Positions 10,191 through 44,170 of a DNA stretch of 64,000 nt are shown one piece after another. The notes under the pieces are model-generated. The model saw only the letters and a program-made list of their open reading frames with translations. It searched no databases and was not told where the DNA came from. The position numbers were made by a program, and so were the translations under genes. Each line of letters starts with the position of its first letter. The stretch's first letter is position 1. Where the stretch lies: the IMG/VR virus record IMGVR_UViG_3300049460_000128, positions 124,001 through 188,000 of that record; one strand, written 5' to 3'.

Positions 10191-10580
10191 ATGCGAAATA
10201 CATTCATTGGTTACAGTACAACTGGCGGAACAAAAGCTGACGGCTTTAAGCTGTACGATGTAGATTTGGTTCGCCAGGATCTCTACAATCACTTTCATAC
10301 TCGAATCGGTGAGCGCATCATGCGCCCCGATTTTGGTTGCCGTATCTGGGACTACATCATGGAACCATTTACGGAAGAAATTCGCAACCTCGCAGAAGCA
10401 GAGGTTGTTCGAATTTGCAATTCAGATTCCCGCGTGCAATTAATTGATACTCAGGTGTATAGTCAAGACAATACCCTGATCGTTGTTGCCACTCTAAATT
10501 ATCTCCCATTTAATACCGTGGAACAATTCCGACTCAATTTCGAGAATCGCCAATCCACCACTGACTCAGAAGGATTCTAA
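10191..10580 (+). CDS. 25: gp25-like baseplate wedge subunit
   Basis: TRIGERIMRPDFGCRIWDYIMEP...DSRV is the gp25/GPW signature. Confidence 0.92.
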   Translation: MRNTFIGYSTTGGTKADGFKLYDVDLVRQDLYNHFHTRIGERIMRPDFGCRIWDYIMEPFTEEIRNLAEAEVVRICNSDSRVQLIDTQVYSQDNTLIVVATLNYLPFNTVEQFRLNFENRQSTTDSEGF

Positions 10581-10582
10581 CC

Positions 10583-28780: not shown

Positions 28781-28800
28781 CAAGTCAACACGCAACAGCA

Positions 28801-28827
28801 AGGCACACCTAGGTGTGCCTTTTCTTT
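28801..28827 (+). terminator. intrinsic terminator
   Basis: AGGCACAC-CTAG-GTGTGCCT followed by TTTCTTT. Confidence 0.85.
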
Positions 28828-28839
28828 GATTTATTAATG

Positions 28840-28872: not shown

Positions 28873-29742
28873 ATGACAATTAATTCAGGTTCGCCGGCCG
28901 CCGCCGCATTTTACAATTCAATTCAGTCAACCGTTGCGACGGTGCTGGGAACTGGGGGATACTATCAAACTCCTGCTAGTTCGCAACGAGTGACTGGTTC
29001 GTCAGTTACCGCGCTAGCCTGGACTCAGCTCCAAACTGATATCAATAAATGCCAAACGCATCAAACTGGTGCCGCTTTCTCAAATGCCAATTTACCCTCG
29101 GTTGTTGCTGGCGCATCAGTCAAGGCCTCTGACTTGAATTTGTATGAGACACAAGCTGGTGTCATCAATACAAATCGATATACGGCCAACGTGGCTAATA
29201 TGACCCTGACATCCAGTACATTGTCGATCGCCCGCGGCAGTATCTGGGGTAGTGGCAGCACATCAATTACAGCCGCATTCCAGGCAGACTGGGGCACGGC
29301 AGCAACCATGGCCGCATTCTTCAACACTGGTGGTGAAGTACGTTGGGTACTGGCACACAATAATATCGCGGGCCCACAGGATTCAAGTTGGCAGTCCCTA
29401 TTGAGTAGTTTGGGCCCATTTGATATTCATGGTGGCTCAGTGAACACAACCACGTCCACCACTGTGAAATTCCCGTTCAATAGTTTGACTACAACCTATC
29501 AGACTATTTTCAGCAAGACGAACACCACTGCCAGCTATACCGCCAATACGATCACCATTCAGGCAAGAATTAATGCGGCAGGCACGGGCATTAACGTGTC
29601 TGTGGTCTTGCTAGACGGTCACACAAACGCTTTCTACGACCAAGTGAGCAGTGGCACTACGCTGACGTGTAGTCACCTCAAATCGACTGTGGTGATGACT
29701 GGTATTACTTCACCAACCTACTCAGTACTTACGGCCTTCTAA
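28873..29742 (+). CDS. virion structural protein, paralogue of the N-terminal domain of 26669
   Basis: Shared blocks AAFYN.IQ, W..L.TDIN.C...Q.G, KASD.NLYE, FF...GEVR. Confidence 0.7.
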   Translation: MTINSGSPAAAAFYNSIQSTVATVLGTGGYYQTPASSQRVTGSSVTALAWTQLQTDINKCQTHQTGAAFSNANLPSVVAGASVKASDLNLYETQAGVINTNRYTANVANMTLTSSTLSIARGSIWGSGSTSITAAFQADWGTAATMAAFFNTGGEVRWVLAHNNIAGPQDSSWQSLLSSLGPFDIHGGSVNTTTSTTVKFPFNSLTTTYQTIFSKTNTTASYTANTITIQARINAAGTGINVSVVLLDGHTNAFYDQVSSGTTLTCSHLKSTVVMTGITSPTYSVLTAF

Positions 29743-30224
29743 TGAGTCATGTGATTTTTATCCGCCACGGCGAGAGCCTGGGCAATGTAGACGGCTACTA
29801 TTACACGTTGCCTGATGTTGCAAATATCCTCAGTAGCAAGGGTGTGGATCAATGCGTTGAACTGAATAAGACCTTTAAGGATCAGCTTGAGCACGATTTC
29901 TACAAAACTGAAACAACTGTGATTCATAGTCGTTATCAACGCGCCAAAATTACAGCACAGATTGTCACCCACAAAAGTGGCATAATTATCCACAGTGAAG
30001 ATGCTCGTATCAATGAACAAGGGCATGACATATATGGAGTCGCGTCTGAATCTGAAGAGTCAGTTAAGACACGGGTTCGATCCATCATTGAACAATATCC
30101 ATTCAATCTGGTATTATTCACACACGGCATGCTCATGGGCGTTATTGACCCAGAACGTGGCGGTGCTCGCAATTGTGAATTACGCAAATACAGTAGAGAA
30201 GAAATCCTAGCCTTGTTGGCTTAA
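29742..30224 (+). CDS. histidine phosphatase (phosphoglycerate-mutase-like) family protein
   Basis: IRHGES, SRYQRA..TA, INEQ and FTHG motifs; TAATG-coupled to the preceding structural gene. Confidence 0.88.
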   Translation: MSHVIFIRHGESLGNVDGYYYTLPDVANILSSKGVDQCVELNKTFKDQLEHDFYKTETTVIHSRYQRAKITAQIVTHKSGIIIHSEDARINEQGHDIYGVASESEESVKTRVRSIIEQYPFNLVLFTHGMLMGVIDPERGGARNCELRKYSREEILALLA

Positions 30225-30276
30225 CTCATATTGAATCACAATCATAAGTAGTTCATAATATCCAAAAGGAGATTTT

Positions 30277-30624
30277 ATGGACACTAGATTGGAACAAGCA
30301 CTAGAATACGCAAACTACAAAGTCACGGTATTCCAACAAAAAGAAAACCTCAAATTGCGCCTCGACAACATGTTGACATACGCGCACAACGGTGGCATTT
30401 TCAAGATCTCAGATACTCTCATTTCATTCGTTGACTCATTGCTGCGTCGCGATGTCGTGGAAGTTGTTCTGATTGATCAACGTGGAAATCCCGTAAAGGT
30501 AGTTGATCTCAAGGCTTTCCAGGAAACCATCTTCAGTCTGTATTTTGAAGCAACGAATGAATACCAGACGGAATTTGATAAACTGCGCAAAGCACGCTCA
30601 GTCAAGCAGGTGACCGGCGTATGA
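30277..30624 (+). CDS. hypothetical protein
   Basis: AGGAG SD, 115 aa, ATGA overlap with the next gene; CATAAGTA late-promoter variant at 30243-30250. Confidence 0.8.
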   Translation: MDTRLEQALEYANYKVTVFQQKENLKLRLDNMLTYAHNGGIFKISDTLISFVDSLLRRDVVEVVLIDQRGNPVKVVDLKAFQETIFSLYFEATNEYQTEFDKLRKARSVKQVTGV

Positions 30625-31523
30625 GCAAAGGCTTTTTGATCTACGCGCACAACAATGAAGAAGTCGACTATGGTAAGTTGGCTCTTTGCTGTGCGCTAAT
30701 GATCAAACGCAACCTAACGGTCAATGCGACATGTCTGGTAACCGATCAAGGCACACTTGACTGGCTGCGTGCCAGTCATACCGCCGAATTGATCGAGTAT
30801 GCGTTCGATCACATCAAGGTTGTCGACTACGCGACATCCCATGGTGGCAGCAAACAAAAGAAATTCCTCGATACCAGTTCCACTAGCAAAATTCTGAGCT
30901 GGCACAATGGCTCCCGTAATACAGCCTACGAACTGACTCCATTCGACGAAACAATTATCCTCGATAGTGATGTACTGGTACAAGATAAATCGTTCGATCT
31001 GGTATGGGGGAATGATGAAGATCTGATGGTCAATAATCAAGCTATTACACTGGAACACCAGAGTCCACGGCATACTGAAGTGCGTCTCGATACAATGGGA
31101 ATTCCCATGTATTGGGCAACCATGGTATATTTCCAGAAGACACCAAGGTCGAAAATGCTCTTTGATTTGGTCTCTCATATCAAGGCACAATACGCATACT
31201 ATCAATACGTATATGAGTTCCCGGGAAAATTATATCGTAATGATTATGCGTTCTCGATTGCAATTCACATGATGAATGGCTTTTTGGAAAATAACGAAGT
31301 GAAGAATTTCCCATGTGGTAAGATCCTCAGTAGTTTCGATACCGATGAATTAATTGGCGTGAAAGAAAATGAACTCACGTTCTTGGTGCAAGATAGCCAA
31401 CAAGAATGGCGATTCTTTGTCAACAATGTTCGAGGCATTACCGTTCATGCTATGAACAAATACGCATTGCTCCGCCATGCACCTACCATAATTGACATTT
31501 ACTATGACTCAACAAAGATTTAA
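30621..31523 (+). CDS. GT-A fold glycosyltransferase-like protein
   Basis: AYELTPFDETIILDSDVLV (DxD after a beta strand), YWATMVYF, RNDYAFSIA. Confidence 0.65.
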   Translation: MSKGFLIYAHNNEEVDYGKLALCCALMIKRNLTVNATCLVTDQGTLDWLRASHTAELIEYAFDHIKVVDYATSHGGSKQKKFLDTSSTSKILSWHNGSRNTAYELTPFDETIILDSDVLVQDKSFDLVWGNDEDLMVNNQAITLEHQSPRHTEVRLDTMGIPMYWATMVYFQKTPRSKMLFDLVSHIKAQYAYYQYVYEFPGKLYRNDYAFSIAIHMMNGFLENNEVKNFPCGKILSSFDTDELIGVKENELTFLVQDSQQEWRFFVNNVRGITVHAMNKYALLRHAPTIIDIYYDSTKI

Positions 31524-32373
31524 ACGTGATCGTGGTTTTTTCACCTTTGCACAAAATGGCACAACGGATTATATTCGTCTAGCCTATGCACTGGCATTGA
31601 GTCTTAAGGCTACTCAAGTGGAAGTTCCCTATTTGTCAATTGGTGTGACGCCAGGTACCGTGGTTGACGCCAAATACGCATGGGCGTTTGATGAGATAGT
31701 GGAAATTCCATGGGGTGATGCAGCAAAGGATGCTGACTGGAAACTCCAGAATGAATGGAAAGCATATCACATGACTCCCTACAGGGAAACAATTAAGCTC
31801 GACTGTGATATGCTGTTCACGACCAATGTTGATTCATGGTGGGAAACACTCAGTCAGCAAGATGTTTGGTTCGCAACCACCGCAACCACATATCGCAATG
31901 ATGTTGTGACCTCTGATTACTATCGTAAGACATTCACGGCAAATAAATTGCCAAATGTCTATACGGCATTCTGCTATTTCAAGCATTCAGATACCGCCTA
32001 CCAGTTATTTGATATGGCTGAAATCATTTATACCAACTGGGAGAAATTCACGTTTGAATTCATGGACGAACCTCGCCCCACTGAAGTAAGTACTGACGTG
32101 GTATTTGCACTCGCGGTCAAGCTTCTGGGTATAGAAGATGAATGTACGCGCCCTGGAACCTTCCCAAGCTTCACACACATGAAGACTCAATTGCAGGGTT
32201 GGAATGTGAATCAAGTTACTGAACACTGGACTGATCATATCGGCGTATATTTCACTGACGAATTGGAATTGAAAATTGGTCGCTACCTGCAATTGGCGCC
32301 AATCCATTATCATGTCAAGAGCTTCATTACCGACGAGATGATTTCCTTGTATGAGAAGAAGGTGATGCCTTGA
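31504..32373 (+). CDS. GT-A fold glycosyltransferase-like protein, paralogue of 30621
   Basis: AYHMTPYRETIKLDCDMLF, VYTAFCYF and STDVVFALA align with 30621. Confidence 0.65.
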   Translation: MTQQRFKRDRGFFTFAQNGTTDYIRLAYALALSLKATQVEVPYLSIGVTPGTVVDAKYAWAFDEIVEIPWGDAAKDADWKLQNEWKAYHMTPYRETIKLDCDMLFTTNVDSWWETLSQQDVWFATTATTYRNDVVTSDYYRKTFTANKLPNVYTAFCYFKHSDTAYQLFDMAEIIYTNWEKFTFEFMDEPRPTEVSTDVVFALAVKLLGIEDECTRPGTFPSFTHMKTQLQGWNVNQVTEHWTDHIGVYFTDELELKIGRYLQLAPIHYHVKSFITDEMISLYEKKVMP

Positions 32374-33293
32374 AAACGTTTTTGTATTATGACCAGTCAA
32401 CTGGTGTCATCAAGGCAATTTCGCCCGTACAATCAAGCGAATTTGACAAATGGGCATTGACTAAACTTGATATCCCGACAGCAAATAAGTTCCTGATGGG
32501 TGAATGGGATACGAATCATTGGTTCGTCAGCAGCAATACGACTGAAGACAAATGCGTGCTCTCCATGAATCAATTCGACTATTTGCCACAGACCTCCACT
32601 ACCATTGAAGTCTTGCCACGTTCAGAACACTCGCAGCATATCAAAACTGCAATCGGCGTAACGATCTACACCAAATTGCAGAAATTTGAATTGTCAGTTG
32701 CGCCTGAAGCCGCAAAGCTGGATCTCAGCAAGATAGAAGATGATACAATGGAATTCTTCATTACCAAGCGTAATGATCCATCCCATATTTTGGGTATGAT
32801 TACCACCAATGCCAAGGAATTGTTTGAGAAGGGTACGCTCATCTTCGACTTCCCCGTTGAAGGAAATGACTTCTCGGTATCCACCAAGCGACTGTTCCGT
32901 TTCTATCAGTTGACTGTACGTCGAAACAAGGTGTCCAATCGGGTCAAGCATTCGCATCATCGCTACAATACCTTGGTGCCATATACTCGCATTAAGACCA
33001 TGCAGGATGGCAAGGATGGTATCATCGTTGTCCACAATGTAAATAAAGATCAATTGGAAATCTCGCTTGATGGCGAAGTGTATGATATAACGACTGATGC
33101 CAGTTCTGAGATCGCTACGTTATTCTTGACACGAGAACGTGATCCCACTATATTGATTGACATCGTAAAGTTAGACCTTCGGGATATCGATTACAACAAG
33201 ACAGTAGTGATCCCAGTACCACATGATGCTGGTGTGGACTTTGGTATCTCGGGATTTCCTTACGTGGACAAACTTTCATTCTTGAGAAAATAA
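32370..33293 (+). CDS. hypothetical protein with internal domain duplication
   Basis: TTG start overlapping the previous stop; repeated FFITKRNDPSHIL / LFLTRERDPTILI. Confidence 0.75.
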   Translation: MKTFLYYDQSTGVIKAISPVQSSEFDKWALTKLDIPTANKFLMGEWDTNHWFVSSNTTEDKCVLSMNQFDYLPQTSTTIEVLPRSEHSQHIKTAIGVTIYTKLQKFELSVAPEAAKLDLSKIEDDTMEFFITKRNDPSHILGMITTNAKELFEKGTLIFDFPVEGNDFSVSTKRLFRFYQLTVRRNKVSNRVKHSHHRYNTLVPYTRIKTMQDGKDGIIVVHNVNKDQLEISLDGEVYDITTDASSEIATLFLTRERDPTILIDIVKLDLRDIDYNKTVVIPVPHDAGVDFGISGFPYVDKLSFLRK

Positions 33294-33322
33294 TGGCTTT
33301 ACAGAAATTTCCTATCACATGA
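33293..33322 (+). pseudogene. 9-codon remnant (MALQKFPIT*) duplicating the N-terminus of gene 34065
   Basis: ATGGCTTTACAGAAATTTCCTATCACATGA versus ATGGCATTAGAGAAATTCCCCATTACG at 34065. Confidence 0.8.
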
Positions 33323-34065
33323 ATTATATAAAGCATTACGATATCTTGATAGCCCGTGCGATAGCCAGAAAGCTTTCTGGCTATTATGAAGTTCATCATA
33401 TAATTCCAAGGTGTATGGGTGGCACAAACAATGCTAATAATTTGGTCGAATTGACTCCAGCTGAACATTTTATAGCTCATTTATTACTCTGTCGCATATA
33501 TCCAAGTGTTGACGGGTTAGTGACCGCCGCATTTTTGATGTCTCACAAGGGAAAATATACAAACAAAGTATATGGTAAATTACGTGAACAATATGCTCAA
33601 ATTCGTAGTCATAATATGATTGGTGAACGTAATCATATGTATGGCAAAACACATGATATTGCAGCTCGAAATAAAGTATCACAAGCTAACACGGGGCGAA
33701 TACGATCAAGTTCGCATAGACAAGCCATAGCCAATGCACAGACTGGTAAAGTCATGAGTGCTTCAACCCGCAAATTGATAAGTGATGCTAATGTTGGTCG
33801 CATAGTGACTGATACAACAAAAGATAAATTATCCAAAGCATTGCAGGGTAAAATACGAAACCCTGATTCAATAGCAAAGCAAAGTATAACAAATACTGGT
33901 TCTGGTAATCCCAATTTTGGAAATGGCCAAGCCGTAACAGGAGCAAAGAACGGAATGTATGGTAAAAAATGGTATGTGAATGCAAAAGGTGAGCGTCGTG
34001 TGATGTTTCCCAATGACGAACGTTTACAACAAGATGACTGGCAAAATGGCAAGGAGTGGAAATAA
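33319..34065 (+). mobile_element. free-standing HNH homing endonuclease with NUMOD3-like repeats
   Basis: EVHHIIPRCMGGTNNANNLVELTPAEHFIAHLLL, then NHMYGKTH...KVSQANTG-type repeats; visibly more AT-rich than its neighbours. Confidence 0.9.
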
Positions 34066-34967
34066 TGGCATTAGAGAAATTCCCCATTACGACGTTTGAT
34101 GTTTTTTTCCTTAGCTACGATGAACCAAATGCAGAGAAGCATTGGGCTGACCTCCTGGACAAATGCCCTTGGGCTAAACGTGTACATGGCGTAAAGGGCT
34201 TTGATGCAGCACACCGCGAATGTGCCAATCAATCTGAAACCCCATGGTTCGTTACGGTCGATGCTGACAATATCGTGTTACCAGAATTCTTTGATATCGT
34301 GGTTGAACTTGATCCCGAGAATGCACCAAACCGCTGCTATTCCTGGAACGCAATCAATATGATGAACGGACTCATCTACGGCAATGGTGGCTTGAAATTG
34401 TGGTCGAAACAATTCGCTGCCAATATGCGTTCACATGAACTGTCGGATGATAAAGACGCGGTTGACTTCTGTTGGGAATCTGATTACAAGCAAGTTCATC
34501 GTACCTTCTCGGAAGTACACAACAATGGGTCAGCGTATCAGGCATTCCGGGTTGGCTATCGCGAAGGCATCAAACTCGCGTTAGATCGAGGCCAGCGCGT
34601 CGCACCAGAATTAATGAAGACGGTGTTGCATAACGTCAATCTTCGCAACCTACGCATATGGTCGTCAGTTGGTGCTGACGTTGAGCATGGTCTGTGGGCC
34701 ATATACGGCACTCGTATGGCATGGAGCCAAATGTGTGATCCAGATTACGACTTCACGGTCATTCGTGATTACGACTGGTTCAATGCCTTCTGGGAACAAA
34801 TCATTGGTGACTTGCCACCCGATCCCGTTGATCGTTTGAATGGATTGCCATTCTTCATCAATGTGTTGGGTGAGGATATTAAGAATAAAACGAAAATTGC
34901 TGTACCATTGCTTGATAGTGATACTAGCGAATTTTTCCGTGATACCTTCAAACTACGAAATGACTGA
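34065..34967 (+). CDS. GT-A (family 2-like) glycosyltransferase-like protein
   Basis: FDVFFLSYDEPNA, RVHGVKGFDAAH, FVTVDADN (DxD), NGLIYGNGGLKLW. Confidence 0.65.
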   Translation: MALEKFPITTFDVFFLSYDEPNAEKHWADLLDKCPWAKRVHGVKGFDAAHRECANQSETPWFVTVDADNIVLPEFFDIVVELDPENAPNRCYSWNAINMMNGLIYGNGGLKLWSKQFAANMRSHELSDDKDAVDFCWESDYKQVHRTFSEVHNNGSAYQAFRVGYREGIKLALDRGQRVAPELMKTVLHNVNLRNLRIWSSVGADVEHGLWAIYGTRMAWSQMCDPDYDFTVIRDYDWFNAFWEQIIGDLPPDPVDRLNGLPFFINVLGEDIKNKTKIAVPLLDSDTSEFFRDTFKLRND

Positions 34968-35283
34968 TTTCCAGGAAGCCAACCAGGTAATGATCCGGTT
35001 GGCTTCCTGCACTGTAGCACTCCGCCACGACTCAATACATGACTTCTTCGAGTCTGTATTCCTCCAAGCCTCACTCAACAAACAGTGGCGGGCTCCCTCG
35101 TATGCAAATGAAGGCCCAAAGGCAGATACCGATTATATCTTGGTATTCTTGCGTGACCTTCTGGCACTTCAATTCCCTGAACCACAAGACCCCAATCTCA
35201 TACAGATGCTGGCCGATGCCAGACTGTTGTATGAATGGGTCAGACCACAATACGAAGAAATTTTCGAGGTGCCATATGAATAA
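34960..35283 (+). CDS. small hypothetical protein, paralogue 1 (FPEPQDPNLIQM)
   Basis: Start MTDFQEAN overlaps the previous gene; shares a motif with the next two ORFs. Confidence 0.7.
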   Translation: MTDFQEANQVMIRLASCTVALRHDSIHDFFESVFLQASLNKQWRAPSYANEGPKADTDYILVFLRDLLALQFPEPQDPNLIQMLADARLLYEWVRPQYEEIFEVPYE

Positions 35284-35653
35284 TTTGTCCTCCACTTGCT
35301 ACCCTATTCGCCACAAGTCGATCGTGCCACTTCCCAATTACGCCATTGAATCGTTTGATGATGCAAACCAAGCCTATATCAAACTGATGGATCTTAAAGC
35401 AACTCTGTTGCTTGGGGCCAATAATCAATTGGTGCGTTTGGCTGTCCAGCAGGTGGTGATTAATGGCATGGTTGGTCACACGTTGGTGAAATGGCAATCT
35501 GCAATCATGGCACACATTCATGCAATAAAGGATCTTATGAATGCCCACTATCCAAATGACAACGATCCTGTGCTTATCGCCATGTTGGAATCTGCAAAGA
35601 TTTCGCATGATGAGATGACACAACTCTATAACGAGCATTGTCATGCTGACTGA
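35276..35653 (+). CDS. small hypothetical protein, paralogue 2 (YPNDNDPVLIAM)
   Basis: GAGGT SD before ATG 35276; shared motif. Confidence 0.7.
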   Translation: MNNLSSTCYPIRHKSIVPLPNYAIESFDDANQAYIKLMDLKATLLLGANNQLVRLAVQQVVINGMVGHTLVKWQSAIMAHIHAIKDLMNAHYPNDNDPVLIAMLESAKISHDEMTQLYNEHCHAD

Positions 35654-35879
35654 TGCCAATTTGATCTATGCGCGTCTGTGTGGAATTAAAGTCAATACTG
35701 CGGGTGGTGTTACCTTGATTGCACGTCATACCTTTATAGACCAAACTCACCAAGCATATATAGAGTATTTGGATACAATCGTGGATGGCGTATGGCCTGA
35801 ACCTGAAGATCCAGAACTACAAGATATGATTCGACGTGCAAATATACGTAAATCAATCTTACACGCATTCAACAAATAA
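35643..35879 (+). CDS. small hypothetical protein, paralogue 3 (WPEPEDPELQDM)
   Basis: Overlapping start; shared motif. Confidence 0.7.
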   Translation: MLTDANLIYARLCGIKVNTAGGVTLIARHTFIDQTHQAYIEYLDTIVDGVWPEPEDPELQDMIRRANIRKSILHAFNK

Positions 35880-35886
35880 GGAACAC

Positions 35887-37320
35887 ATGAGCGACACACC
35901 AAAATCAACAAATCAACTCAACATGGAAGCCATGATGGCCCGCATGGATGACGTAAAGGCTAAGAGCGGATCATCCACCATGTGTACTGCAAAATGGTTG
36001 CAAAGCACTGTCCATTTGAGTAATGGTCACACGCACTCATGTCACCACCCTTCTATTCACAAAATTCCAATCAGTGAAATTAAACGCAATCCGGCAGCAC
36101 TGCACAATACCGAGTTCAAGATCGAACAACGTAAAAAGATGCTGGCTGGCGAGCGTCCTGCTGAATGCCAATACTGCTGGAACATTGAAGACCTGCCAGG
36201 TAATCACATCAGTGATCGCACCTACAAGAGTGCTGACCTGGGCTGGTCGTATCCAAATTTGCAAGACGTGATCGAAAGCAAGGGTGGCGAGAATATCAAT
36301 CCGTCATACCTGGAAGTCTCCTTCGATTCAACGTGTAACATGAAATGCATGTATTGCACGCCTGACGTATCCAGCAAATGGATGGAAGAAAGTAAGCAGT
36401 ACGGGCATTATCCCAATACTTCCCATTATGTGGGTGGCATTGAATGGCTCAAGCAGCAGAACAAAATGCCAATTCCGCAAAGGGAAGACAATCCATACGT
36501 GGATGCGTTCTGGGAATGGTGGCCTGATCTGTACAAGAGTCTGCATACCTTCCGCATTACGGGCGGTGAACCCCTGTTGAGCAAAAATACCTGGCGTGTG
36601 TTGGAAGAGATCAAGAACAATCCACGTTCAGACTTGACTCTTGCTATCAATATCAACATGATGGCTCCTGATGATTTAATCGATCGTTTTATTCAGTATT
36701 ACAACGACATTGCACCTAACATCAAAGAGTTCCAGGTGTACACGAGTTGTGAAGCACATGGCAAACAAGCTGACTATATTCGCACAGGACTTGACTACGA
36801 TAAATTCATGGCAAATTGCCGTAAGTTCCTGTCCAGTACTGGTGCATGGTCTCGTTTGAATTTCATGATCACATTCAACGTATTGAGCCTCAGCACCTTC
36901 AAGGAATTCCTGACTGATATCTGGACTATGCGTACCGAATTCAATGAGTCGGATGCAATCAATCGTGTGCCTATGATGATCAACTATTTGCGCTGGCCGC
37001 AATTCCAAGATGTACGAGTAGCACCAGCGGAATACAAGGAAAAATACCTGAAGGTCATTAAAGATTACGTGGAAGCACACACGCGCAATACAAGCCCGAA
37101 TAAAGCCGGTAGGTTCTATTTGGAAGAAGTAGATCAGATCAATCGTTTGGGTGAGTATATGTTCGAACCCATGGAAGCTGGACACTTGAAAATTCAACAT
37201 AAAGACTTTGGTGCCTTCTATCCAGAATTCGATCGTCGTCGTAATGTGAATTTTGCTGAAACCTTCCCGGATCTGGTGGACTTCTTGAATCAATGTATCG
37301 AGGTAAACAATGAGCAGTAA
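35887..37320 (+). CDS. radical SAM enzyme with N-terminal twitch/SPASM-like domain (1 of 5)
   Basis: CNMKCMYC, ITGGEPLL; N-terminal CTAKW...HSCHHP...ECQYCW; TAAGGA SD. Confidence 0.9.
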   Translation: MSDTPKSTNQLNMEAMMARMDDVKAKSGSSTMCTAKWLQSTVHLSNGHTHSCHHPSIHKIPISEIKRNPAALHNTEFKIEQRKKMLAGERPAECQYCWNIEDLPGNHISDRTYKSADLGWSYPNLQDVIESKGGENINPSYLEVSFDSTCNMKCMYCTPDVSSKWMEESKQYGHYPNTSHYVGGIEWLKQQNKMPIPQREDNPYVDAFWEWWPDLYKSLHTFRITGGEPLLSKNTWRVLEEIKNNPRSDLTLAININMMAPDDLIDRFIQYYNDIAPNIKEFQVYTSCEAHGKQADYIRTGLDYDKFMANCRKFLSSTGAWSRLNFMITFNVLSLSTFKEFLTDIWTMRTEFNESDAINRVPMMINYLRWPQFQDVRVAPAEYKEKYLKVIKDYVEAHTRNTSPNKAGRFYLEEVDQINRLGEYMFEPMEAGHLKIQHKDFGAFYPEFDRRRNVNFAETFPDLVDFLNQCIEVNNEQ

Positions 37321-38641
37321 AAAAACAATCTTCATCAAAAATATTACGGAAAAACTCGATGCAGTTAGCCCATCAATGTGTTTGGCAAAGTGGACACAAA
37401 CGACCACTTATCTGAATACGGGCCATACCCATTCGTGTCACCATCCTTCAGTGCATAAGATCCCCACTGAAGGCTTGGACGAACATCCTGAATGGATTCA
37501 CAATACGCCATACAAGCAACAAATCCGTCAGCAGATGCTCGACGGCATTCGCCCACCTGAGTGCGACTATTGCTGGCGCATTGAAGACTTGCCAGGTGAC
37601 CATGCAAGCGACCGTATGCTGAAATCTGCGGCACACTGGTCAGCAGATCACTATGACCAAATTGTGAAGTCTGGCACTGGACCAAACTTTGCACCAACGA
37701 TGTTGGAAGTGTCATTCGAGACCACGTGTAATTTCGCATGTTCGTATTGCCTGCCTGAAGTATCAAGCAAGATCTACGGTGAGATTCAAGCACATGGTCC
37801 CTATCAGCTGTTCAGTCGTACCATTCATACAATCAGGGAAGATCGGTCGACAACTAAACTTGATCTGAATACTCCAGGCGACAATGTGTACATCGATGCG
37901 TTCTGGAAAGCTATCCCGCAATGGTGGTCAACCCTTGATACCTTCCGTATTACTGGTGGTGAACCTCTCTTGAGCAAACACACTTGGGGTATGATGGACT
38001 TCGTGGAAGCCAATGCCAACAAGGACTTGACCTTTGCGATCAATACGAACTTGGGTGTACCGGATCAGAAAATTGATCAGTTGATCAAACGTGTGAATGA
38101 GATTGAACCAAACCTTCGTCGCTTTACCGTCTATACAAGCGTGGAGGCGACTGGTAAGCAAGCTGAATACATTCGTTACGGCATGGACTATCCGAAGTTT
38201 ATGGCAAACGTTTCGCGTGTCTTGGACGAGACCAATGCTGACTTGGCATTGATGACGACAATCAACATTTTGAGCTATTCGACATTCACCGAAGCCATTC
38301 ATCAATTCCTGGCCTTGCGTGCTCGTTATCCTAATCGTGTGAATTTGTCATTCAACTATTTGCGGCACCCAGAGTGCTTAGATATGCGCAATCTGCCCGA
38401 AGTGTTGAAACAAAAATGGGCAGCAGAATTGTATCAATTGATGGAGCATCCGTTCATTAACCAATACGAAACTATGTCCATCTCTCGGGTAATTGACTAT
38501 ATGCTGAGCAGCGTTGAACCAGCAATCCTGGAGGTCAATCAAAAGGATCTCGTCATGTATGCCCGCGAACTCGACAAACGACGCGGCCTTGACTTCCCAG
38601 GCACTTTCCCTGACCTGTTTGCATTGTTGCCAGGAGTATGA
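37310..38641 (+). CDS. radical SAM enzyme with N-terminal twitch-like domain (2 of 5)
   Basis: CNFACSYC, ITGGEPLL; CLAKW...HSCHHP...ECDYCW; close paralogue of 35887. Confidence 0.9.
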   Translation: MSSKKTIFIKNITEKLDAVSPSMCLAKWTQTTTYLNTGHTHSCHHPSVHKIPTEGLDEHPEWIHNTPYKQQIRQQMLDGIRPPECDYCWRIEDLPGDHASDRMLKSAAHWSADHYDQIVKSGTGPNFAPTMLEVSFETTCNFACSYCLPEVSSKIYGEIQAHGPYQLFSRTIHTIREDRSTTKLDLNTPGDNVYIDAFWKAIPQWWSTLDTFRITGGEPLLSKHTWGMMDFVEANANKDLTFAINTNLGVPDQKIDQLIKRVNEIEPNLRRFTVYTSVEATGKQAEYIRYGMDYPKFMANVSRVLDETNADLALMTTINILSYSTFTEAIHQFLALRARYPNRVNLSFNYLRHPECLDMRNLPEVLKQKWAAELYQLMEHPFINQYETMSISRVIDYMLSSVEPAILEVNQKDLVMYARELDKRRGLDFPGTFPDLFALLPGV

Positions 38642-39864
38642 AAATGAAAACAAAAGATTTAAACAAGTCAACAATATGCGCGCAACCATGGTTTGGGATA
38701 ACCATCAAACCAGATGGAGTAGCGGGTATTTGTTGTGAGGTGACCGAAGAATTGACGGATATGAATATCCGCACACATTCATTCGCCGAAATGCAAAGTC
38801 ATCCTATTGTGACACGAATTAAAGATGAAATGCTGGCGGGCAAAAAACCAAAAGAATGCTGGCGCTGCTGGCAGAAAGAAGCACACGGCGCCCCAAGCTT
38901 ACGCCACACATTGAATAATAGGTATGCTGAGTATAACCCAACATCTGAGGAGTTTGATCCTGAGTTGATCATACCTCAAAATCTTGAAATTGTGCTAGGT
39001 AATCTGTGTCAACTGCGATGCGTTATGTGTCACCCTAGTCGCTCACGCAAAGTTGAAAACACTTTCAAGTACATCATGATTAAAGATATGCGTGATAGCT
39101 ATGAAGGACTGGTTTCCACTTTACCACCAGAGTTCGATACCTCGTGGGTTGAAGATGAACAGCTATGGGAAAGTATTGCAGATCAAGGTAAAGAGGCCCG
39201 TCGTATATACCTCAACGGCGGTGAGCCTCTATTGGCTAAGCATCATGAAAAGGTATTGGAAAAGCTTATTGCGAGTGGTAAAGCTAAAGACACCGAACTC
39301 ATATACAGTACCAATGGCTTTTTGTTAGAAGACGAGCATATGGCGTTATGGCAAGAATTCAAACAAGTCAATATCGCCCTGTCAATTGACGATTTGGATG
39401 ATCGTAACCACTTTATTCGTAATCCATCCAATTGGGTTAAGCTAATGGAATCGGTTGATAAGGTGGTTGAATGGCAAAAAGACCCCAAGAATAAAGAAAT
39501 TTACATAGGTATCTGGTGTGCCATCAACATGTTAAGCTTCGCATACTTGCCTGACTATTTGGAATTCTTTGCAACGAAATATCCATCAATTGTGATCAAA
39601 GGTTGGCGTGCAATCCAAACACCTGAGTACTTGAATCCAGGTAATTTGCCTCTCGAATTCAAGGAACAAGTGGCAAAGGAAATCAAGAATAAGATTGCCC
39701 AATACCCGCAATTTGCACACCTGCGCAGTGACATAGACCACATTGTAAATTCACCATCTAATGAGAAGTTACTAGATGACGGCATCGCATTTATGAAGAT
39801 GAACGCAGAATGCTATAAGGTTGACTTGAATACTACGTTTGATCGTATGGGTAAATTCTTATGA
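38638..39864 (+). CDS. radical SAM enzyme with N-terminal twitch-like domain (3 of 5)
   Basis: CQLRCVMC, LNGGEPLL, YSTNG; CAQPW...ICCE...ECWRCW. Confidence 0.9.
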   Translation: MKMKTKDLNKSTICAQPWFGITIKPDGVAGICCEVTEELTDMNIRTHSFAEMQSHPIVTRIKDEMLAGKKPKECWRCWQKEAHGAPSLRHTLNNRYAEYNPTSEEFDPELIIPQNLEIVLGNLCQLRCVMCHPSRSRKVENTFKYIMIKDMRDSYEGLVSTLPPEFDTSWVEDEQLWESIADQGKEARRIYLNGGEPLLAKHHEKVLEKLIASGKAKDTELIYSTNGFLLEDEHMALWQEFKQVNIALSIDDLDDRNHFIRNPSNWVKLMESVDKVVEWQKDPKNKEIYIGIWCAINMLSFAYLPDYLEFFATKYPSIVIKGWRAIQTPEYLNPGNLPLEFKEQVAKEIKNKIAQYPQFAHLRSDIDHIVNSPSNEKLLDDGIAFMKMNAECYKVDLNTTFDRMGKFL

Positions 39865-40937
39865 TTAAGCCAATCATATTTCACTCACATCGAATGACTC
39901 CGGCGCAAAATATACCCGAAGTGACGTGTCGTGTGCCATATCAAAGAATGTATGTCCAAGAGCAAGGCAACCTATATCACTGTTGCACGCATTGGATGCC
40001 ATATTCAATTGGTAATATCCGAGATTCGAGCATATTGGACTATTATCAATCAACTGAATGGGAGATGATATCCAGGACGTTTGAAGATGGCTCATTTAAA
40101 TATTGCAATGCTGATCTCTGCCCGTCACTTCAGACCTATAACACTATAGGGAGCTTGTCAACGGATCTTAGACCCATACATGAGTTGGAACAGATAAAAA
40201 GCGCAAAATATCTTGAAGTAACTTTGAATTACGACACGTCGTGTAATTTGGCATGTCCATCGTGTCGTAACGAATTGCAGTTAGTGAAGAATGATCCAGT
40301 GTTGCAAAACATACATGAAAAAACACTAGCATCAGTAACTGAATTGCTGGATAATGGATATAAAGTAACACTGGCGGTAACGAGTGCCGGCGACCCATTT
40401 GCCAGTAAACTATACATTGATGCGTTGCAAAACTACCATCATGACTCTGCAAATTACGATTACTTCATAGTCACAAACGGTACGTTATTGACTCAAAAGA
40501 AACTTGAGTGGGATAATATCCGCCATCGCACTCGAGGTTTTGCTATATCGGTAGATGCAGCCACAAAAGAAACGTATGCGAAGGTTAGACGGCTTGGTGA
40601 TTTTGATCAATTGACCGCCAATCTTAAAAACTTGAATGAACAGAAACGAAATGGCTTCTTCACACTGGATCCATATATCACTGTTAACTTCGTGATATCA
40701 TCATTGAATTTTAGAGAGCTCCCGCTGTTCATGGAGCAGATGCTGGAATTGGAACAGATCTCCGAAATCTGGTTGAACCTCATTGCTGACTGGGGCCATT
40801 TGAATAATTTCAACGACTATGCTATTTGGCGTGAAGATCACCCTGATCATGAAGAATTTCTAGCCGTCATGCAGCATCCATTGTTGAAGTCGAACAAACT
40901 CAAAGCCACCAATGCCATGCGTTTCATTCATGTCTAA
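39861..40937 (+). CDS. radical SAM enzyme with N-terminal twitch-like domain (4 of 5)
   Basis: CNLACPSC, SAGDPF in place of GGEP, VTNGTLL, ISVDAATKETYAKVR; CRVPY...HCC...YCNADLCP. Confidence 0.88.
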   Translation: MIKPIIFHSHRMTPAQNIPEVTCRVPYQRMYVQEQGNLYHCCTHWMPYSIGNIRDSSILDYYQSTEWEMISRTFEDGSFKYCNADLCPSLQTYNTIGSLSTDLRPIHELEQIKSAKYLEVTLNYDTSCNLACPSCRNELQLVKNDPVLQNIHEKTLASVTELLDNGYKVTLAVTSAGDPFASKLYIDALQNYHHDSANYDYFIVTNGTLLTQKKLEWDNIRHRTRGFAISVDAATKETYAKVRRLGDFDQLTANLKNLNEQKRNGFFTLDPYITVNFVISSLNFRELPLFMEQMLELEQISEIWLNLIADWGHLNNFNDYAIWREDHPDHEEFLAVMQHPLLKSNKLKATNAMRFIHV

Positions 40938-42129
40938 GATTACTTGTTTGGCGCCCTGGGTCCATGGGTTTGCCACTAATAAACTAAAGGGACTCTGCTG
41001 CATTGCAGGCAACATGCAGCCGTTCGAAGCACATTCCGAATTCTGGAATGGAGACTACATGCGTGAGGTTAGGACTAAATTCCTAGCTGGCAAAACAATA
41101 CCTGAATGCTCGCTGTGTTTCGCCCACAGTAATAGGGAAGAAGACAACCGATACTATCAGGTCTTTGATCGAGACTATGGGCACCTAGTCGATGACATCA
41201 AAACATCAACTGATGCTGAAACCGGAGCAACTACGTTTCAGCCAGTGTACTTGGATTATCGACACTCGCTATGCAATTTGAAGTGCAAGACATGTTCGTC
41301 ACATTCGTCTAGTTCAATAGCATCAACATCACGTATGATCCCCATAGTGTCATACAAGTCAGTATTCGCAGATCACCTATCGGACTTGAAAGCCGTCATC
41401 ACCGACAAGACACAGAAGATATATTGGGCTGGTGGTGAACCGTTAATGAGCCCAGTGCATTGGGAAATACTTGAACATATGAAAGACAGACAGTTTTTCA
41501 ATGCTCATATGACGTACAATACAAACGCCACCAAATTAACCAATGACGAAATGTTTGATCAAGCGGTCAATTATTTCAAAATGTTCAACTCGCATGTGGG
41601 AATAAGTGTTGACGGTATAGACGAAGTCAACGATTATATTAGAGCAGGTTCAGATTGGAAATCCATTAATGCCACGATCAAAAAGTTATTGGGAGCATTG
41701 GGACGTCATGTCATCAGTTTAGACATAACCATGACTAACCTGACCTTCCTCCAATTGCCGGCGATAATTCAATACGCAATTGATACTGGATTGGAACATT
41801 GCTATTTCAAAAACATGATTGAATTTGAAGGTGACGTTCATGATGGGCAAATATACGATGACAATACGTACTTGAGTGTCAGCCTGATTTCACCCGCAAC
41901 ATTCAACACCATATCCAATGAGGTGACTGCAATACTAGCAAATTCAACTCTCCAAACAAACATCAGTTCGTTGTTGGTCTTCATTCAGAATCAATGCATT
42001 GGGCGAGAATTTACTGACCACGAACGGCAGGCAATTGTGGACTTTGAACAACGTCACAATGACACTCTATCACTGTATGACATAGTTCGTCACCAGGCGC
42101 TGCCTGGCACGGTCGTTGACACTCTTTGA
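40930..42129 (+). CDS. radical SAM enzyme with N-terminal twitch-like domain (5 of 5)
   Basis: CNLKCKTC, WAGGEPLM, YNTNAT, ISVDG; CLAPW...LCCI...ECSLC. Confidence 0.88.
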   Translation: MSKITCLAPWVHGFATNKLKGLCCIAGNMQPFEAHSEFWNGDYMREVRTKFLAGKTIPECSLCFAHSNREEDNRYYQVFDRDYGHLVDDIKTSTDAETGATTFQPVYLDYRHSLCNLKCKTCSSHSSSSIASTSRMIPIVSYKSVFADHLSDLKAVITDKTQKIYWAGGEPLMSPVHWEILEHMKDRQFFNAHMTYNTNATKLTNDEMFDQAVNYFKMFNSHVGISVDGIDEVNDYIRAGSDWKSINATIKKLLGALGRHVISLDITMTNLTFLQLPAIIQYAIDTGLEHCYFKNMIEFEGDVHDGQIYDDNTYLSVSLISPATFNTISNEVTAILANSTLQTNISSLLVFIQNQCIGREFTDHERQAIVDFEQRHNDTLSLYDIVRHQALPGTVVDTL

Positions 42130-42170
42130 CGTTGGATGCACCCATGAGCCAAGTCATGGCATACAGTCGT

Positions 42171-42200
42171 AAAAAAGCCCAGGACGTCCTGGGCTTTTTT
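42171..42200. terminator. bidirectional intrinsic terminator
   Basis: Perfect palindrome AAAAAAGCCCAGGACGTCCTGGGCTTTTTT between convergent genes. Confidence 0.9.
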
Positions 42201-42213
42201 GTGATGAAGTTGC

Positions 42214-44004
42214 TTAGTTGTTGGTGATTTTGATGTTGTACGTTGCGTCGAAGCTTTCAACATCGCTACCGACTGGAATCAACCAGTTGACCCAATACAT
42301 GCCGTTCGAGTAAGTGCCCGTATGGGTGTAGGTGATCGACGAGGTCAAAGTGTTCAGGTTGATCTTCTGGATTGCCGAAGTCGTGTAGTAGTTCTTGCCG
42401 TAGTTCGCTGGGCCGCCTTCGATATTGGTGCGCAGCAGGTACATGTTGCCGCCGTTTACGACCATGTCCAGTGGGAAACCGTAGTCGATACTTGCTGGCA
42501 GTGGCGTGACCTTGGTGTTCACGAACGAGTCATTGCCGTCGTTCTGGATGATCATGGTGTTACGCACGTTCACTGCATTCGGGCCGCTGTCTTCGCCGCC
42601 AAACCACACGTCGTATTTGCCGGTGCCGAAGTTTACCAGTTCAACTGAAGCAATTGCACGTTTGGTAAAGTCTGGCAGGCGAGTTTTGTCAATTGCAAAC
42701 GTACCATCGCGGTTGTTCTTCAGGAAGAATGGGGTCAGTTGGATCGAATTGTCGGTCACCAGAATGTCCGCATAGCCGGTCGACTTCGAATCGATAGTCG
42801 CTGCTGCGTGGCAGAAGCAAGTCAGTGGCAGCGTAACGTTTTTGTAAGTGCCGTCAGCTTGCGACATCAGTACGTGTGGTTGTTCACCAGCGTATGGAGG
42901 AGCGTCAACACCATGGCAAGCAAAGAACACATCTGGTTTACCGTCGTTGTTGAGGTCAGCAACAACAGCTTTACGTGGGTGAATGCAACCTTTAGTGTCT
43001 TTCAGCAGGGCTGCGGTATTGTCGACCCATTTGCCGGCGGCGTCACGTTTGTAAAAGTGGATCGAACCGTAACGAGTAGGATCAATCTTGCCGTTCACGA
43101 AGTAGTCCAGCGTATGCGTTACCAGGGAGTACGTGCCATCCTGGAAGAAGTCCGCGAATGCTGCTGCATTGCCGCCAGCTACTTCGGCGGGCAACACTTG
43201 CGAGCCGACCGTGGCCGCTGCCGTCACTTTGTTTTCGTACGACGACATTTTCGGAGCAATGTGGCCGGTATTGAACGGGATGTAGTCGAAGCCGTTGATC
43301 AGGCCAGGGTTCACGTTGTTCTTGTTCTCGTCGCTCTCGCTGAAGCCGGTGATTACGTTGGTACGCGGAGTACCACGATCAAGAGCGGCGGTCCACCAGT
43401 CAACGCCGGCTTTCTCGCCTGTGCGATGCAGCACGTTTTGATACAGCAGGTTCGTGTACGCAACGTTGACCACGTTGTCGCCGTACGTGCGTTTGAATTC
43501 GTCGCTGTTCAAGAAACCGTTGGCGATGTCCAGCATGTCATGACCGTTTTGATTGGCGTAGATCCAGAAGCCCAGACCAGCCGGATCAGGTTTGCGGTTG
43601 AACGCCGCTTGATACAGACGGTACACTTGGCCGGCCGAGCCGTTGGTGTCGAATGTCGTGTAGTAGTCCACGAACTTGATCAGGTTGGGATTTTGGTAGG
43701 TCTGGACTTCGTTGGTGCTGTTGTTGGTCACAGTCACGACGCCCGTTTGTTGGTTCTTGTTGATGGTGTAGTTTGCGCGGTAGCCGGTAATGGTCACCAC
43801 ATCGGTTACCACTGGAGCGGCAGCAGCAGCACCTTGCATGACGCGTGGCGTGCCGCCTTGCAGCATACGTTTAATTTCTGGAGGTTGCTCTGGAGCACCT
43901 TGAACGACTTGCGAAGAGGTCGACGGAGCTTGCGAACCACCGCCACCGCAGCCTACCAGGATTGCTGCAAACATCGCGCTTACCAGCAAATTAGAACGTT
44001 TCAT
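42214..44004 (-). CDS. lipoprotein with DUF4214-like domain and FG-GAP/VCBS repeats
   Basis: GAGGAG SD; signal peptide and lipobox LVGC-GGGG; VYRLYQAAFNRKPDPAGLGFW, LYQNVLHR; ADFFQDG and ADLNNDGKPDV repeats. Confidence 0.85.
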   Translation of the reverse strand: MKRSNLLVSAMFAAILVGCGGGGSQAPSTSSQVVQGAPEQPPEIKRMLQGGTPRVMQGAAAAAPVVTDVVTITGYRANYTINKNQQTGVVTVTNNSTNEVQTYQNPNLIKFVDYYTTFDTNGSAGQVYRLYQAAFNRKPDPAGLGFWIYANQNGHDMLDIANGFLNSDEFKRTYGDNVVNVAYTNLLYQNVLHRTGEKAGVDWWTAALDRGTPRTNVITGFSESDENKNNVNPGLINGFDYIPFNTGHIAPKMSSYENKVTAAATVGSQVLPAEVAGGNAAAFADFFQDGTYSLVTHTLDYFVNGKIDPTRYGSIHFYKRDAAGKWVDNTAALLKDTKGCIHPRKAVVADLNNDGKPDVFFACHGVDAPPYAGEQPHVLMSQADGTYKNVTLPLTCFCHAAATIDSKSTGYADILVTDNSIQLTPFFLKNNRDGTFAIDKTRLPDFTKRAIASVELVNFGTGKYDVWFGGEDSGPNAVNVRNTMIIQNDGNDSFVNTKVTPLPASIDYGFPLDMVVNGGNMYLLRTNIEGGPANYGKNYYTTSAIQKINLNTLTSSITYTHTGTYSNGMYWVNWLIPVGSDVESFDATYNIKITNN

Positions 44005-44170
44005 TTCATCTCCTCGTGTGTACAATAGTTCATATGGTACGTTCATCTAAAGAAGAAATCAAGTGCATTCATTGCTCTACTGCAAAAAGCATACACTCTT
44101 GTATTCTAAGTAAGCCTGATTTCACCAGTTTACGGGCTCCAGCTTGCATGTTCGTAGCTGGTAACGTTGT

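Follow-up and report, generated by a model that had tools for sequence, protein, structure and literature searches.

A glycosyltransferase and radical SAM gene cassette adjoining the tail fiber genes of a jumbo phage, and its probable role in a sugar pathway

The window analyzed here is a stretch of 64,000 nucleotides (positions 124,001 to 188,000 of IMG/VR virus record IMGVR_UViG_3300049460_000128) from a jumbo myophage of roughly 297 kb. Immediately after the tail fiber genes, fifteen + strand ORFs fill positions 29742–42129. Most of their junctions are ATGA or TAATG overlaps, including a TAATG between the preceding 289-aa gene and the first of the fifteen. Together with their flanks the features are as follows:

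26669–28780 (+), tail fiber-like protein, 703 aa from this start
28800–28829 (+), terminator-like hairpin with a T-run, upstream boundary of the unit
28873–29742 (+), p289, short Ser/Thr-rich fiber-like protein, first gene of the unit
29742–30224 (+), small histidine phosphatase (branch 1)
30277–30624 (+), p115, conserved 115-aa protein
30621–31523 (+), GT1, GT8-like retaining-type GT-A glycosyltransferase (predicted fold)
31492–32373 (+), GT2, paralogue of GT1, probable ATG start at 31504
32370–33293 (+), p307, variable protein of unknown function
33319–34065 (+), HNH/NUMOD3 homing endonuclease, inserted at the p307/GT3 junction
34065–34967 (+), GT3, probable GT2-like GT-A glycosyltransferase; the ORF opens at GTG 34056 but the ATG at 34065 is the likely start
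34960–35283 (+), small paralogue A, 107 aa
35276–35653 (+), small paralogue B, 125 aa from the ATG at 35276
35643–35879 (+), small paralogue C, 78 aa
35887–37320 (+), rS1, N-terminal-twitch radical SAM (rSAM) enzyme
37310–38641 (+), rS2, N-terminal-twitch rSAM
38638–39864 (+), rS3, N-terminal-twitch rSAM of a separate subfamily
39861–40937 (+), rS4, divergent rSAM with an N-terminal SPASM/twitch-like domain
40912–42129 (+), rS5, N-terminal-twitch rSAM, alternative ATG start at 40930
42166–42205 (strand not assigned), bidirectional intrinsic terminator between convergent genes

The layout and content described in the earlier note, that is, fifteen co-oriented, mostly overlapping ORFs comprising a phosphatase, three DxD proteins, three small paralogues and five CxxxCxxC enzymes, were confirmed. 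Three of the fifteen, p115, p307 and the homing endonuclease, had not been described in it. The note had found no clear terminator before 42171, and the hairpin at this position is indeed strong (−24.7 kcal/mol, z −6.9), while weak hairpins inside the cluster are no more frequent than in shuffled sequence (16 found, 17.7 expected). A further strong terminator-like hairpin (28800–28821; 9-bp stem, −14.7 kcal/mol, z −4.0) lies just upstream of p289, and the 289-aa gene and the cluster therefore look like one separate unit. The note had also placed a late promoter-like octamer before this gene. The octamer at 28841 reads CTAAATAA; exact TATAAATA occurs only at 24896 and 25655, and neither motif is enriched over shuffles. 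A late promoter is not demonstrable from sequence.

The 703-aa protein was identified as a tail fiber-like protein by DUF7483 [2.3e-16] and phrog_24898 [tail fiber]. Its N-terminal 278 aa are paralogous to p289 (33% identity, 2e-34). Serine and threonine account for 24.6% of the former and 28.7% of the latter, compared with 12–17% for other proteins in the window. A member of the p289 family precedes p115 in most relatives and in Ralstonia phage RsoM2USA, the only cultured carrier of this cassette.

The phosphatase possesses PF00300 [His_Phos_1] at 39.8 bits against a cut-off of 21.7, with RHGES at residues 8–12, which includes the catalytic RHG histidine, and THG at 127–129. P115 might resemble a tail fiber assembly chaperone, since its Atlas features and structure are similar to DUF4376/Caudo_TAP (0.91 and TM 0.58–0.64, respectively), but Pfam does not confirm this and we regard it only as a lead. 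P307 has no family match; it occupies a conserved position between GT2 and GT3, where its homologs share 22–30% identity and are about 200 aa long in most relatives. The homing endonuclease was recognized through phrog_655 [1e-52] and NUMOD3 [4e-10]; it is a free-standing gene flanked by a 31-nt direct repeat of the GT3 start (26 of 31 identical) and is absent at this site in relatives. The three small paralogues are only weakly alike: 3.7e-6 between the first two as ORFs, then 8e-4 for A and C, which share a PEPxDPxL motif, and 1.0.

The AF2 model of GT1 (pLDDT 94) shows a Rossmann-like GT-A fold. Foldseek searches against PDB gave 206 hits at E ≤ 0.001, including glycogenin, LgtC, XXYLT1, LARGE1, UGGT and GlyE, from 3.5e-7, and viral GT8/NDP-sugar transferases also matched. 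Its D115-S-D117 motif is invariant in 39 homologs. GT2 is related to GT1 [2.8e-7], with reciprocal cross-hits in relatives, and carries a DCD motif. Neither protein belongs by sequence to Pfam Glyco_transf_8, nor to any Pfam or NCBIfam family at E ≤ 0.01, and they are GT8-like by fold only, GT2 by paralogy. In GT3 the motif D69-A-D71 is invariant in 27 homologs. Its PF00535 score, 13.1 bits, falls below the gathering score of 23.3, and 10 of the 27 homologs match this family weakly (best E 0.0029). The structural neighbors of its Atlas model (pTM 0.89) are viral clusters (TM 0.90–0.93), two of three of which were automatically named GT2-like. The assignment of GT3 is only probable.

All five rSAM proteins contain CxxxCxxC, and four exceed the NCBIfam cut-off of 170 bits for N-terminal-twitch rSAM [NF033640]: rS1 (318.8), rS2 (303.1), rS3 (275.4) and rS5 (211.4). 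RS4 reaches only 49.5 bits and is not a member by this test, though it has a SPASM hit at residues 23–83 [9e-8]; its nearest relative is bacterial. RS1, the member which usually sits next to GT3 (AF2 pLDDT 92), possesses C150xxxC154xxC157 together with an N-terminal set, C33, C52, C94 and C97, all invariant in 26–27 sequences. RS2 is 43% identical to rS1. RS3 has a SPASM hit at residues 14–78 and orthologues at 55–61% identity in two of the related loci (L008 and L011).

In 79 related viral contigs the order fiber gene, p115, GT1, GT2, the variable protein and GT3 is nearly invariant. A fiber-like gene lies upstream in 67 of 72 loci, p115 upstream of GT1 in 73 of 76, GT2 downstream in 75 of 75 and GT3 downstream in 68 of 68. 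In 37 of the 49 loci with enough flank, rSAM genes follow within 6 kb after GT3, and their number ranges from none to five; 12 of the 49 have none. These counts include near-duplicate loci and thus overstate independence. The same order is seen in RsoM2USA and in contigs of 523 kb and 608 kb. The phosphatase, the small paralogues and rS4 are absent from all 79 relatives sampled.

An association between rSAM and glycosyltransferase genes is independently supported by gene fusions and by bacterial neighborhoods. Fusion proteins include P0166 (rSAM with PF00535), P0210 (GT2_2/7C with rSAM) and P0159 (GT3 profile, 1.5e-46, with rSAM), so that the same rSAM family occurs fused to GT2-type and GT3-type transferases. 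GT2 and rSAM genes are interleaved in locus L169, and a UDP-glucose/GDP-mannose dehydrogenase lies beside the fusion in locus L171. In Bdellovibrionota the rSAM genes form tandem arrays whose recurrent neighbors are GT4, GT2, an ABC-2 exporter pair, PMT_2 and a carbamoyltransferase. The closest solved sequences to the rSAM profile act on small molecules or sugars: MoaA [1e-5], BlsE [1e-3] and BtrN [0.05]. The coupling is frequent but not obligatory, since rSAM genes are missing from some phage loci and many bacterial rSAM arrays show no glycosyltransferase among the gene families we annotated.

The earlier note had proposed a phage-encoded pathway which builds a glycan and tailors it by radical chemistry late in infection, most plausibly on virion proteins, and had named the lack of a GT-A fold or catalytic residues, and a failure of the two gene types to co-occur in relatives, as grounds for rejecting it. 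This interpretation is partly supported. GT1 has the predicted fold and motif, GT2 by paralogy and GT3 probably; at least four rSAM proteins are of the twitch type; and the two gene types do co-occur beside fiber genes. On the other hand the phosphatase, the small paralogues, the endonuclease and rS4 are additions specific to this phage and not part of the core, the rSAM genes are facultative, late timing is inferred from position only, and the target, whether virion, host surface or DNA, remains an inference from synteny.

We consider a tail fiber-linked glycosylation cassette the best explanation, though we would hold it only about as likely as not. What the analysis establishes is a conserved core following the fiber genes, that is, p115, two GT8-like GT-A transferases, a variable protein of roughly 200–300 aa and a probable GT2-like transferase, succeeded by a variable array of N-terminal-twitch rSAM enzymes; that no protein of the cluster has a transmembrane segment, all being soluble; that these genes form one co-oriented, translationally coupled unit starting with a Ser/Thr-rich fiber paralogue; and that the rSAM family belongs to the same pathway type as glycosyltransferases. 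The remainder is inferred. In this view the three transferases would build a short glycan in the cytoplasm from nucleotide sugars supplied by the host, and the rSAM enzymes, presumed to bind Fe-S clusters and cleave SAM, would abstract a hydrogen atom from sugar carbons to oxidize, epimerize, dehydrate or branch them, using the N-terminal auxiliary cluster for electron transfer. The acceptor would be the fiber protein or proteins encoded immediately upstream, p289 being the best candidate and the 703-aa protein another, although tail fibers are generally Ser/Thr-rich and composition is thus weak evidence. In the published virion analysis of RsoM2USA only the most abundant SDS-PAGE bands were identified, and no glycan analysis was found in the passages searched (PMC8504454). 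Against this reading, bacterial GT8 enzymes act mostly on LPS, and the bacterial rSAM homologs sit in exporter-type polysaccharide loci rather than next to protein acceptors. Differences in rSAM and GT3-paralogue content between phages would, on this model, diversify the glycan.

The main rival, which we think unlikely, is that the transferases and rSAM enzymes modify a host surface glycan (LPS core, O-antigen or capsule precursors) during infection, perhaps to block superinfection or to stop progeny binding to debris, using the lipid carriers and exporters of the host. GT8-fold enzymes such as LgtC act on LPS, the bacterial rSAM homologs lie beside ABC-2 exporters, GT4/GT2 genes and a PMT_2-type transferase, and GT8 and rSAM genes in the host-recognition cluster of pelagimyophages were read as LPS-related (PMC7029224). 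However, the cassette has no membrane protein, flippase, polymerase or Gtr-type component, its core is nearly always placed directly after fiber genes and a chaperone-like gene, and it shares orientation and overlapping junctions with a fiber paralogue.

Alternatively, and with slightly less support, the rSAM array may be a set of protein or peptide maturases working independently of the transferases, cross-linking or epimerizing fiber proteins or small peptides, such as the three small paralogues, in RiPP fashion. The top Foldseek hits of rS1 include the RiPP maturases SkfB and SuiB, many weak NCBIfam hits are to peptide maturases, an M16 peptidase and extra rSAM genes occur in some bacterial loci, small ORFs lie before or between rSAM genes here and in loci L004 and L008, and some bacterial arrays lack an annotated glycosyltransferase. 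The TM scores to the maturases are, however, only about 0.3. The three small ORFs of the window have no homolog in the 79 relatives and those of L004 and L008 belong to another family, so that no conserved precursor was found; family searches found no RRE or PqqD domain; and among the top 150 representatives the rSAM fusions whose partner could be identified are mostly to glycosyltransferases.

Hypermodification of packaged DNA appears very unlikely. Phage glycosyltransferases can modify DNA, rSAM enzymes take part in 7-deazaguanine DNA modification and all the proteins are cytoplasmic, but the cassette sits in the structural module, far from the nucleotide metabolism genes of the window (thymidylate synthase and DHFR, 52448–54075), its link to fiber genes is conserved, and family searches found no hydroxymethylase, kinase or base-exchange enzyme in or beside it. 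Equally improbable is a soluble glycosylated small molecule such as an aminocyclitol or nucleoside-type metabolite, for although BlsE and BtrN are antibiotic-pathway enzymes and a carbamoyltransferase lies downstream in locus L002, the cassette has no scaffold-forming enzyme, aminotransferase or exporter and the conserved fiber linkage would go unexplained.

With regard to known systems, rS1, rS2, rS3 and rS5 share with NF033640 the N-terminal Cys cluster and CxxxCxxC, but we found no characterized member and no solved structure, and pairing with GT-A transferases next to phage fiber genes is not part of the family definition. BtrN, BlsE and AprD4, twitch-domain sugar-tailoring enzymes, likewise combine an rSAM core with one auxiliary-cluster domain, and carbohydrates are the inferred substrates here; their auxiliary domain is C-terminal rather than N-terminal, TM scores are about 0.26–0.32 and there is no sequence-level membership. 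GT1 shares the GT-A fold and DxD metal site with the GT8 enzymes glycogenin, LgtC, XXYLT1, LARGE1 and GlyE, several members of this family glycosylating proteins, but with about 12–16% identity, TM 0.4–0.5 and no PF01501 hit.

In pelagimyophages, studied in comparison with cyanomyophages, rSAM cassettes lie in the variable host-recognition cluster next to the fiber genes and GT8 is the commonest glycosyltransferase family (PMC7029224), while a T4-like marine viral genome has 12 rSAM genes (PMC5332604). Those reports give no family assignment, no fixed GT1-GT2-GT3 core and no evidence for rSAM-glycosyltransferase coupling, and interpreted the genes as LPS-related or as Fe-S metabolism. In mycobacteriophages (Freeman et al. 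2023, Cell Host Microbe, as cited in PMC12619734 and PMC12801897) phage-encoded glycosyltransferases are linked to virion glycosylation, the glycans sitting on capsid and tail-tube subunits (PMC12619734). The transferase genes there reportedly lie beside the structural genes. In the putative cassette described here, which likewise adjoins the structural module, the genes follow the tail fiber genes of a jumbo myophage, the transferases are GT8-like and probable GT2-like proteins with no Pfam match, and up to five rSAM enzymes are attached.

The 296,594-bp viral contig IMGVR_UViG_3300049460_000128, from which the window comes, carries, upstream of the cluster, genes for virion structural proteins, a baseplate hub/lysozyme, a 1,109-aa baseplate wedge protein, a 3,662-aa giant protein and tail-fibre-like proteins. 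The wedge protein is 38–40% identical to those of Atu_ph07, Phosso and Rak2-like jumbo phages, while a nucleotide search of the cluster against GenBank phages revealed no relative. The features of the window discussed here are as follows.

13912–24900 (+): the 3,662-aa ORF after the baseplate wedge gene, conserved at 3,586–3,670 aa in the relatives of 523 kb and 608 kb; a 2,541-aa structural protein occupies this position in Ralstonia phage RsoM2USA
24896 (+): exact octamer TATAAATA at the 3' end of the giant ORF, about 150 nt upstream of the gene at 25053
25655 (+): exact octamer TATAAATA just before the fibre-like gene at 25695
28800–28821: strong hairpin (z -4.0), upstream boundary of the unit
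28841: octamer reading CTAAATAA
29742–42129 (+): fifteen ORFs, most junctions of which are ATGA or TAATG overlaps
33126–33154: good sigma-70-like site (TTGACA-17-TATATT), upstream of the endonuclease gene
33288–33318 and 34060–34090: 31-nt direct repeat, 26 of 31 positions identical, flanking the endonuclease gene
33319–34065 (+): HNH/NUMOD3 homing endonuclease gene
42166–42205: strong hairpin (z -6.9), downstream boundary of the unit
42214–44046 (-): 610-aa protein with a lipoprotein-like N-terminus (LVGC), DUF4214 and an FG-GAP repeat, converging on the terminator of the cluster and lying in the only stretch of the window with about 53% GC, against about 45% elsewhere
52448–54075 (-): a thymidylate synthase of 380 aa spanning a 266-position profile, and therefore carrying large insertions, with a DHFR gene next to it

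The cluster described in the earlier note is real and non-random. Pfam and NCBIfam confirm a branch-1 histidine phosphatase and five radical SAM (rSAM) proteins, rS1 to rS5, four of which pass the curated cut-off of NF033640, the N-terminal-twitch rSAM subfamily; rS4 does not, but it also has an N-terminal SPASM-like domain. Three of the ORFs were left undescribed in the note, namely p115, a conserved 115-aa protein, p307, a variable protein, and the homing endonuclease (phrog_655, E 1e-52). Since the endonuclease gene is flanked by a direct repeat of the start of GT3, the third putative glycosyltransferase gene, it is an insertion; the repeat duplicates the p307/GT3 junction and leaves a nine-codon remnant of the GT3 start before the endonuclease gene.

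Internal terminator-like and promoter-like sites are no more frequent than in shuffled sequence. The note had also placed a late-promoter-like octamer ahead of the unit. The two exact TATAAATA octamers listed above are the only ones in the window and both are candidate T4-type late promoters, but none of these motifs, including that at 28841, is enriched. A late promoter at 28841 is plausible but not shown.

Single-sequence searches of GT1, GT3 and rS1 against PDB sequences gave nothing useful, and profile searches of GT3 and of the p289 family (p289 being the first gene product of the unit) against PDB gave only chance hits. Searches of Pfam and PHROGs returned nothing for p115, GT1, GT2, p307 or the three small paralogues. 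An AlphaFold model of GT1 built on 39 homologues has a pLDDT of 94, and its best solved neighbours are the GT8 GT-A enzymes glycogenin, LgtC, XXYLT1, LARGE1, UGGT and GlyE, from E 3.5e-7. Viral neighbours include cyanophage and giant-virus GT8/NDP-sugar transferases, and residues D115 and D117 are invariant. GT2 is a paralogue of GT1. GT3 has an invariant D69xD71, ten of 27 homologues give weak PF00535 hits, and its structural neighbours in the Atlas are viral clusters, two of three auto-named GT2-like; we regard its assignment as probable rather than proven. None of the three is a sequence-level member of a Pfam GT family.

The GT1 family matched at least 561 IMG/VR stretches, of which 79 loci other than that of the window were analyzed. 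The order of genes around GT1 is nearly invariant among them, although the loci include near-duplicates and the counts are not independent.

Features relative to GT1 in the 79 loci; each denominator is the number of loci with enough flanking sequence.
p115 directly upstream: 73 of 76
Fibre-like gene upstream: 67 of 72
GT2 downstream: 75 of 75
GT3 downstream: 68 of 68
At least one rSAM within 6 kb after GT3: 37 of 49
Extra GT3 paralogue(s) and no rSAM: 11 of 49
Neither: 1 of 49

The rSAM copy number ranges from 0 to 5. The same order appears in contigs of 523 kb and 608 kb, in a 36.5-kb NCBI contig, and in RsoM2USA, the only GenBank phage with GT1. The latter is cultured and carries a minimal version composed of three transferases, one extra GT3 paralogue and one rSAM, such that the hypothesis of a fibre-linked glycan pathway is open to direct testing. 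In RsoM2USA the homologous genes are annotated as hypothetical, and only the most abundant virion bands were identified (PMC8504454).

The phosphatase, the endonuclease, the three small paralogues and rS4 have no counterpart in any of these loci, and are additions specific to this phage rather than core parts. We had considered whether the small paralogues might be conserved rSAM partners or precursors, but this was rejected since they have no homolog in the 79 loci. The small ORFs found at the same place in two related loci (L004: 14181–14533, 16023–16235 and 17670–17954; L008: 6620–7166), before and between the rSAM genes, belong to a different family with a shared C-terminal motif (DA..FKL.F/W).

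The protein p289 is a paralogue of the N-terminal 278 aa of the neighbouring 703-aa fibre protein (E 2e-34), and a family member precedes p115 in most relatives, including RsoM2USA. These proteins contain 24.6–28.7% Ser+Thr, against 12–17% for other proteins of the window; the p289 family median is 23.5%, against 10–12% for the enzyme families. The suggestion that p196 equals ORF356, a virion protein of RsoM2USA confirmed by mass spectrometry, was rejected (E 0.17).

An alignment of 26–27 rS1-type sequences shows four invariant N-terminal cysteines, the CxxxCxxC motif and a GGE motif; one alignment for structure prediction was built without a row from an annotated GenBank record. The rS1 model is confident (pLDDT 92) but has no close solved relative: SkfB, BlsE, SuiB and viperin align only on the core, at a TM of about 0.3. 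By profile, MoaA (1e-5), BlsE (1e-3) and BtrN (0.05) are nearest. The profile finds 1,408 clusters at 50% identity with E <= 1e-30. In reference genomes the family is concentrated in Bdellovibrionota at 39–61% identity, the highest values being those of loci L090 and L091, and this includes chromosome-scale contigs. Tandem arrays of 7–8 of these genes lie among housekeeping genes of these predatory bacteria (contigs L149, which is chromosome OZ220490.1, L126 and L130), suggesting repeated exchange, or a host link.

A tree of 213 sequences places the five paralogues of the window in five separate positions and needs at least 17 switches between viral and bacterial labels. The paralogues are therefore old subfamilies, exchanged repeatedly, although some of the "bacterial" contigs may be mis-binned phage, L101 being an example. 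In a 635-kb JGI contig (L005) an rS3 orthologue (58% identity; gene at 10001–11236) lies among many small ORFs next to bacterial housekeeping genes (EPSP synthase, ribosomal protein S1); the region looks like a prophage or island and has no GT1–GT3 core.

Several lines of evidence link the rSAM enzymes to glycan chemistry. In phages their genes lie next to GT3. Of 45 bacterial loci of at least 12 kb, 21 contain recurrent GT4, GT2 or PMT_2 transferases or an ABC-2 exporter pair, and a carbamoyltransferase also recurs. Natural fusion proteins exist among the top 150 representatives: P0166 is an rSAM plus PF00535 (E 5.6e-17), P0210 is a GT2_2/7C domain plus rSAM, and P0159 matches the GT3 profile (E 1.5e-46) and continues into an rSAM, although the last sits on a 2.7-kb contig and could be an assembly artefact. 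In a 29-kb contig (L169, JGI 3300048881) GT2 and rSAM genes are interleaved over more than 18 kb, one being an rSAM-GT2 fusion, and this may be the clearest natural system for studying the enzyme pair. A UDP-glucose/GDP-mannose dehydrogenase lies beside the fusion in another locus, L171. An unannotated family of about 313 aa, found at L103 (11559–12548) and in 19 other bacterial loci, has an invariant SDxD within a consensus GxSDLDL motif, resembling Pol-beta-type nucleotidyltransferases, and lies directly beside the rSAM gene in 12 of its 20 occurrences.

The interpretation offered in the note, a phage glycan pathway with radical tailoring linked to the fibres, is only partly supported. The analysis bears it out on enzyme identity, with GT3 no more than probable, on co-occurrence and on rSAM-GT coupling, and corrects it on which genes belong to the pathway; the target and the timing of expression, together with the catalytic activities themselves, are inferred. 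No cluster protein has a transmembrane segment, and the pathway is therefore cytoplasmic and has no export machinery of its own. The fixed position after the fibre genes, and the translational coupling to a fibre paralogue, favour virion fibres as the acceptor. In the Atlas search p115 resembles tail-fibre assembly proteins (DUF4376/Caudo_TAP-like), which points the same way, but this was not confirmed in 42 homologues scanned against Pfam.

Remodelling of the host surface remains a serious rival, as does an rSAM role on proteins or peptides. DNA modification is unlikely, given the location and the absence of base-modifying partners.

One might go further and suggest, though we consider it doubtful, that the N-terminal-twitch rSAM enzymes, a family of about 1,400 clusters at 50% identity, are an uncharacterised class of glycan-tailoring radical enzymes which work stepwise with GT-A transferases. 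In this view jumbo phages would use variable sets of them to coat their receptor-binding fibres with radical-modified sugars, giving a diversifiable virion glycan that affects adsorption, stability or recognition by host defences, and the same genes would be exchanged repeatedly with Bdellovibrionota.

We found no paper characterising NF033640 or the cassette described here, nor any characterised member or solved structure for this sizeable subfamily, for which the present model, if right, would give a first functional handle. The "moraphage" paper reports four core GT orthogroups, but we could not link that lineage to this one. Pelagimyophages have been reported with rSAM cassettes in the host-recognition cluster next to their fibre genes, and with GT8 as the commonest glycosyltransferase family, and the authors read these genes as LPS-related (PMC7029224); a T4-like marine viral genome has 12 rSAM genes (PMC5332604). 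If right, the model would also offer an explanation for why rSAM cassettes accumulate next to host-recognition genes in marine myophages.

Virion glycosylation by phage transferases is established for mycobacteriophages (cited in PMC12619734 and PMC12801897). The cassette described here differs from known phage glycosylation cassettes in having an uncharacterised rSAM family attached. If the model is right, it extends phage virion glycosylation from mycobacteriophage capsids and tail tubes to the tail fibres of a large, mostly uncultured jumbo-phage clade (at least 561 IMG/VR loci), and adds radical SAM chemistry to viral glycan biosynthesis.
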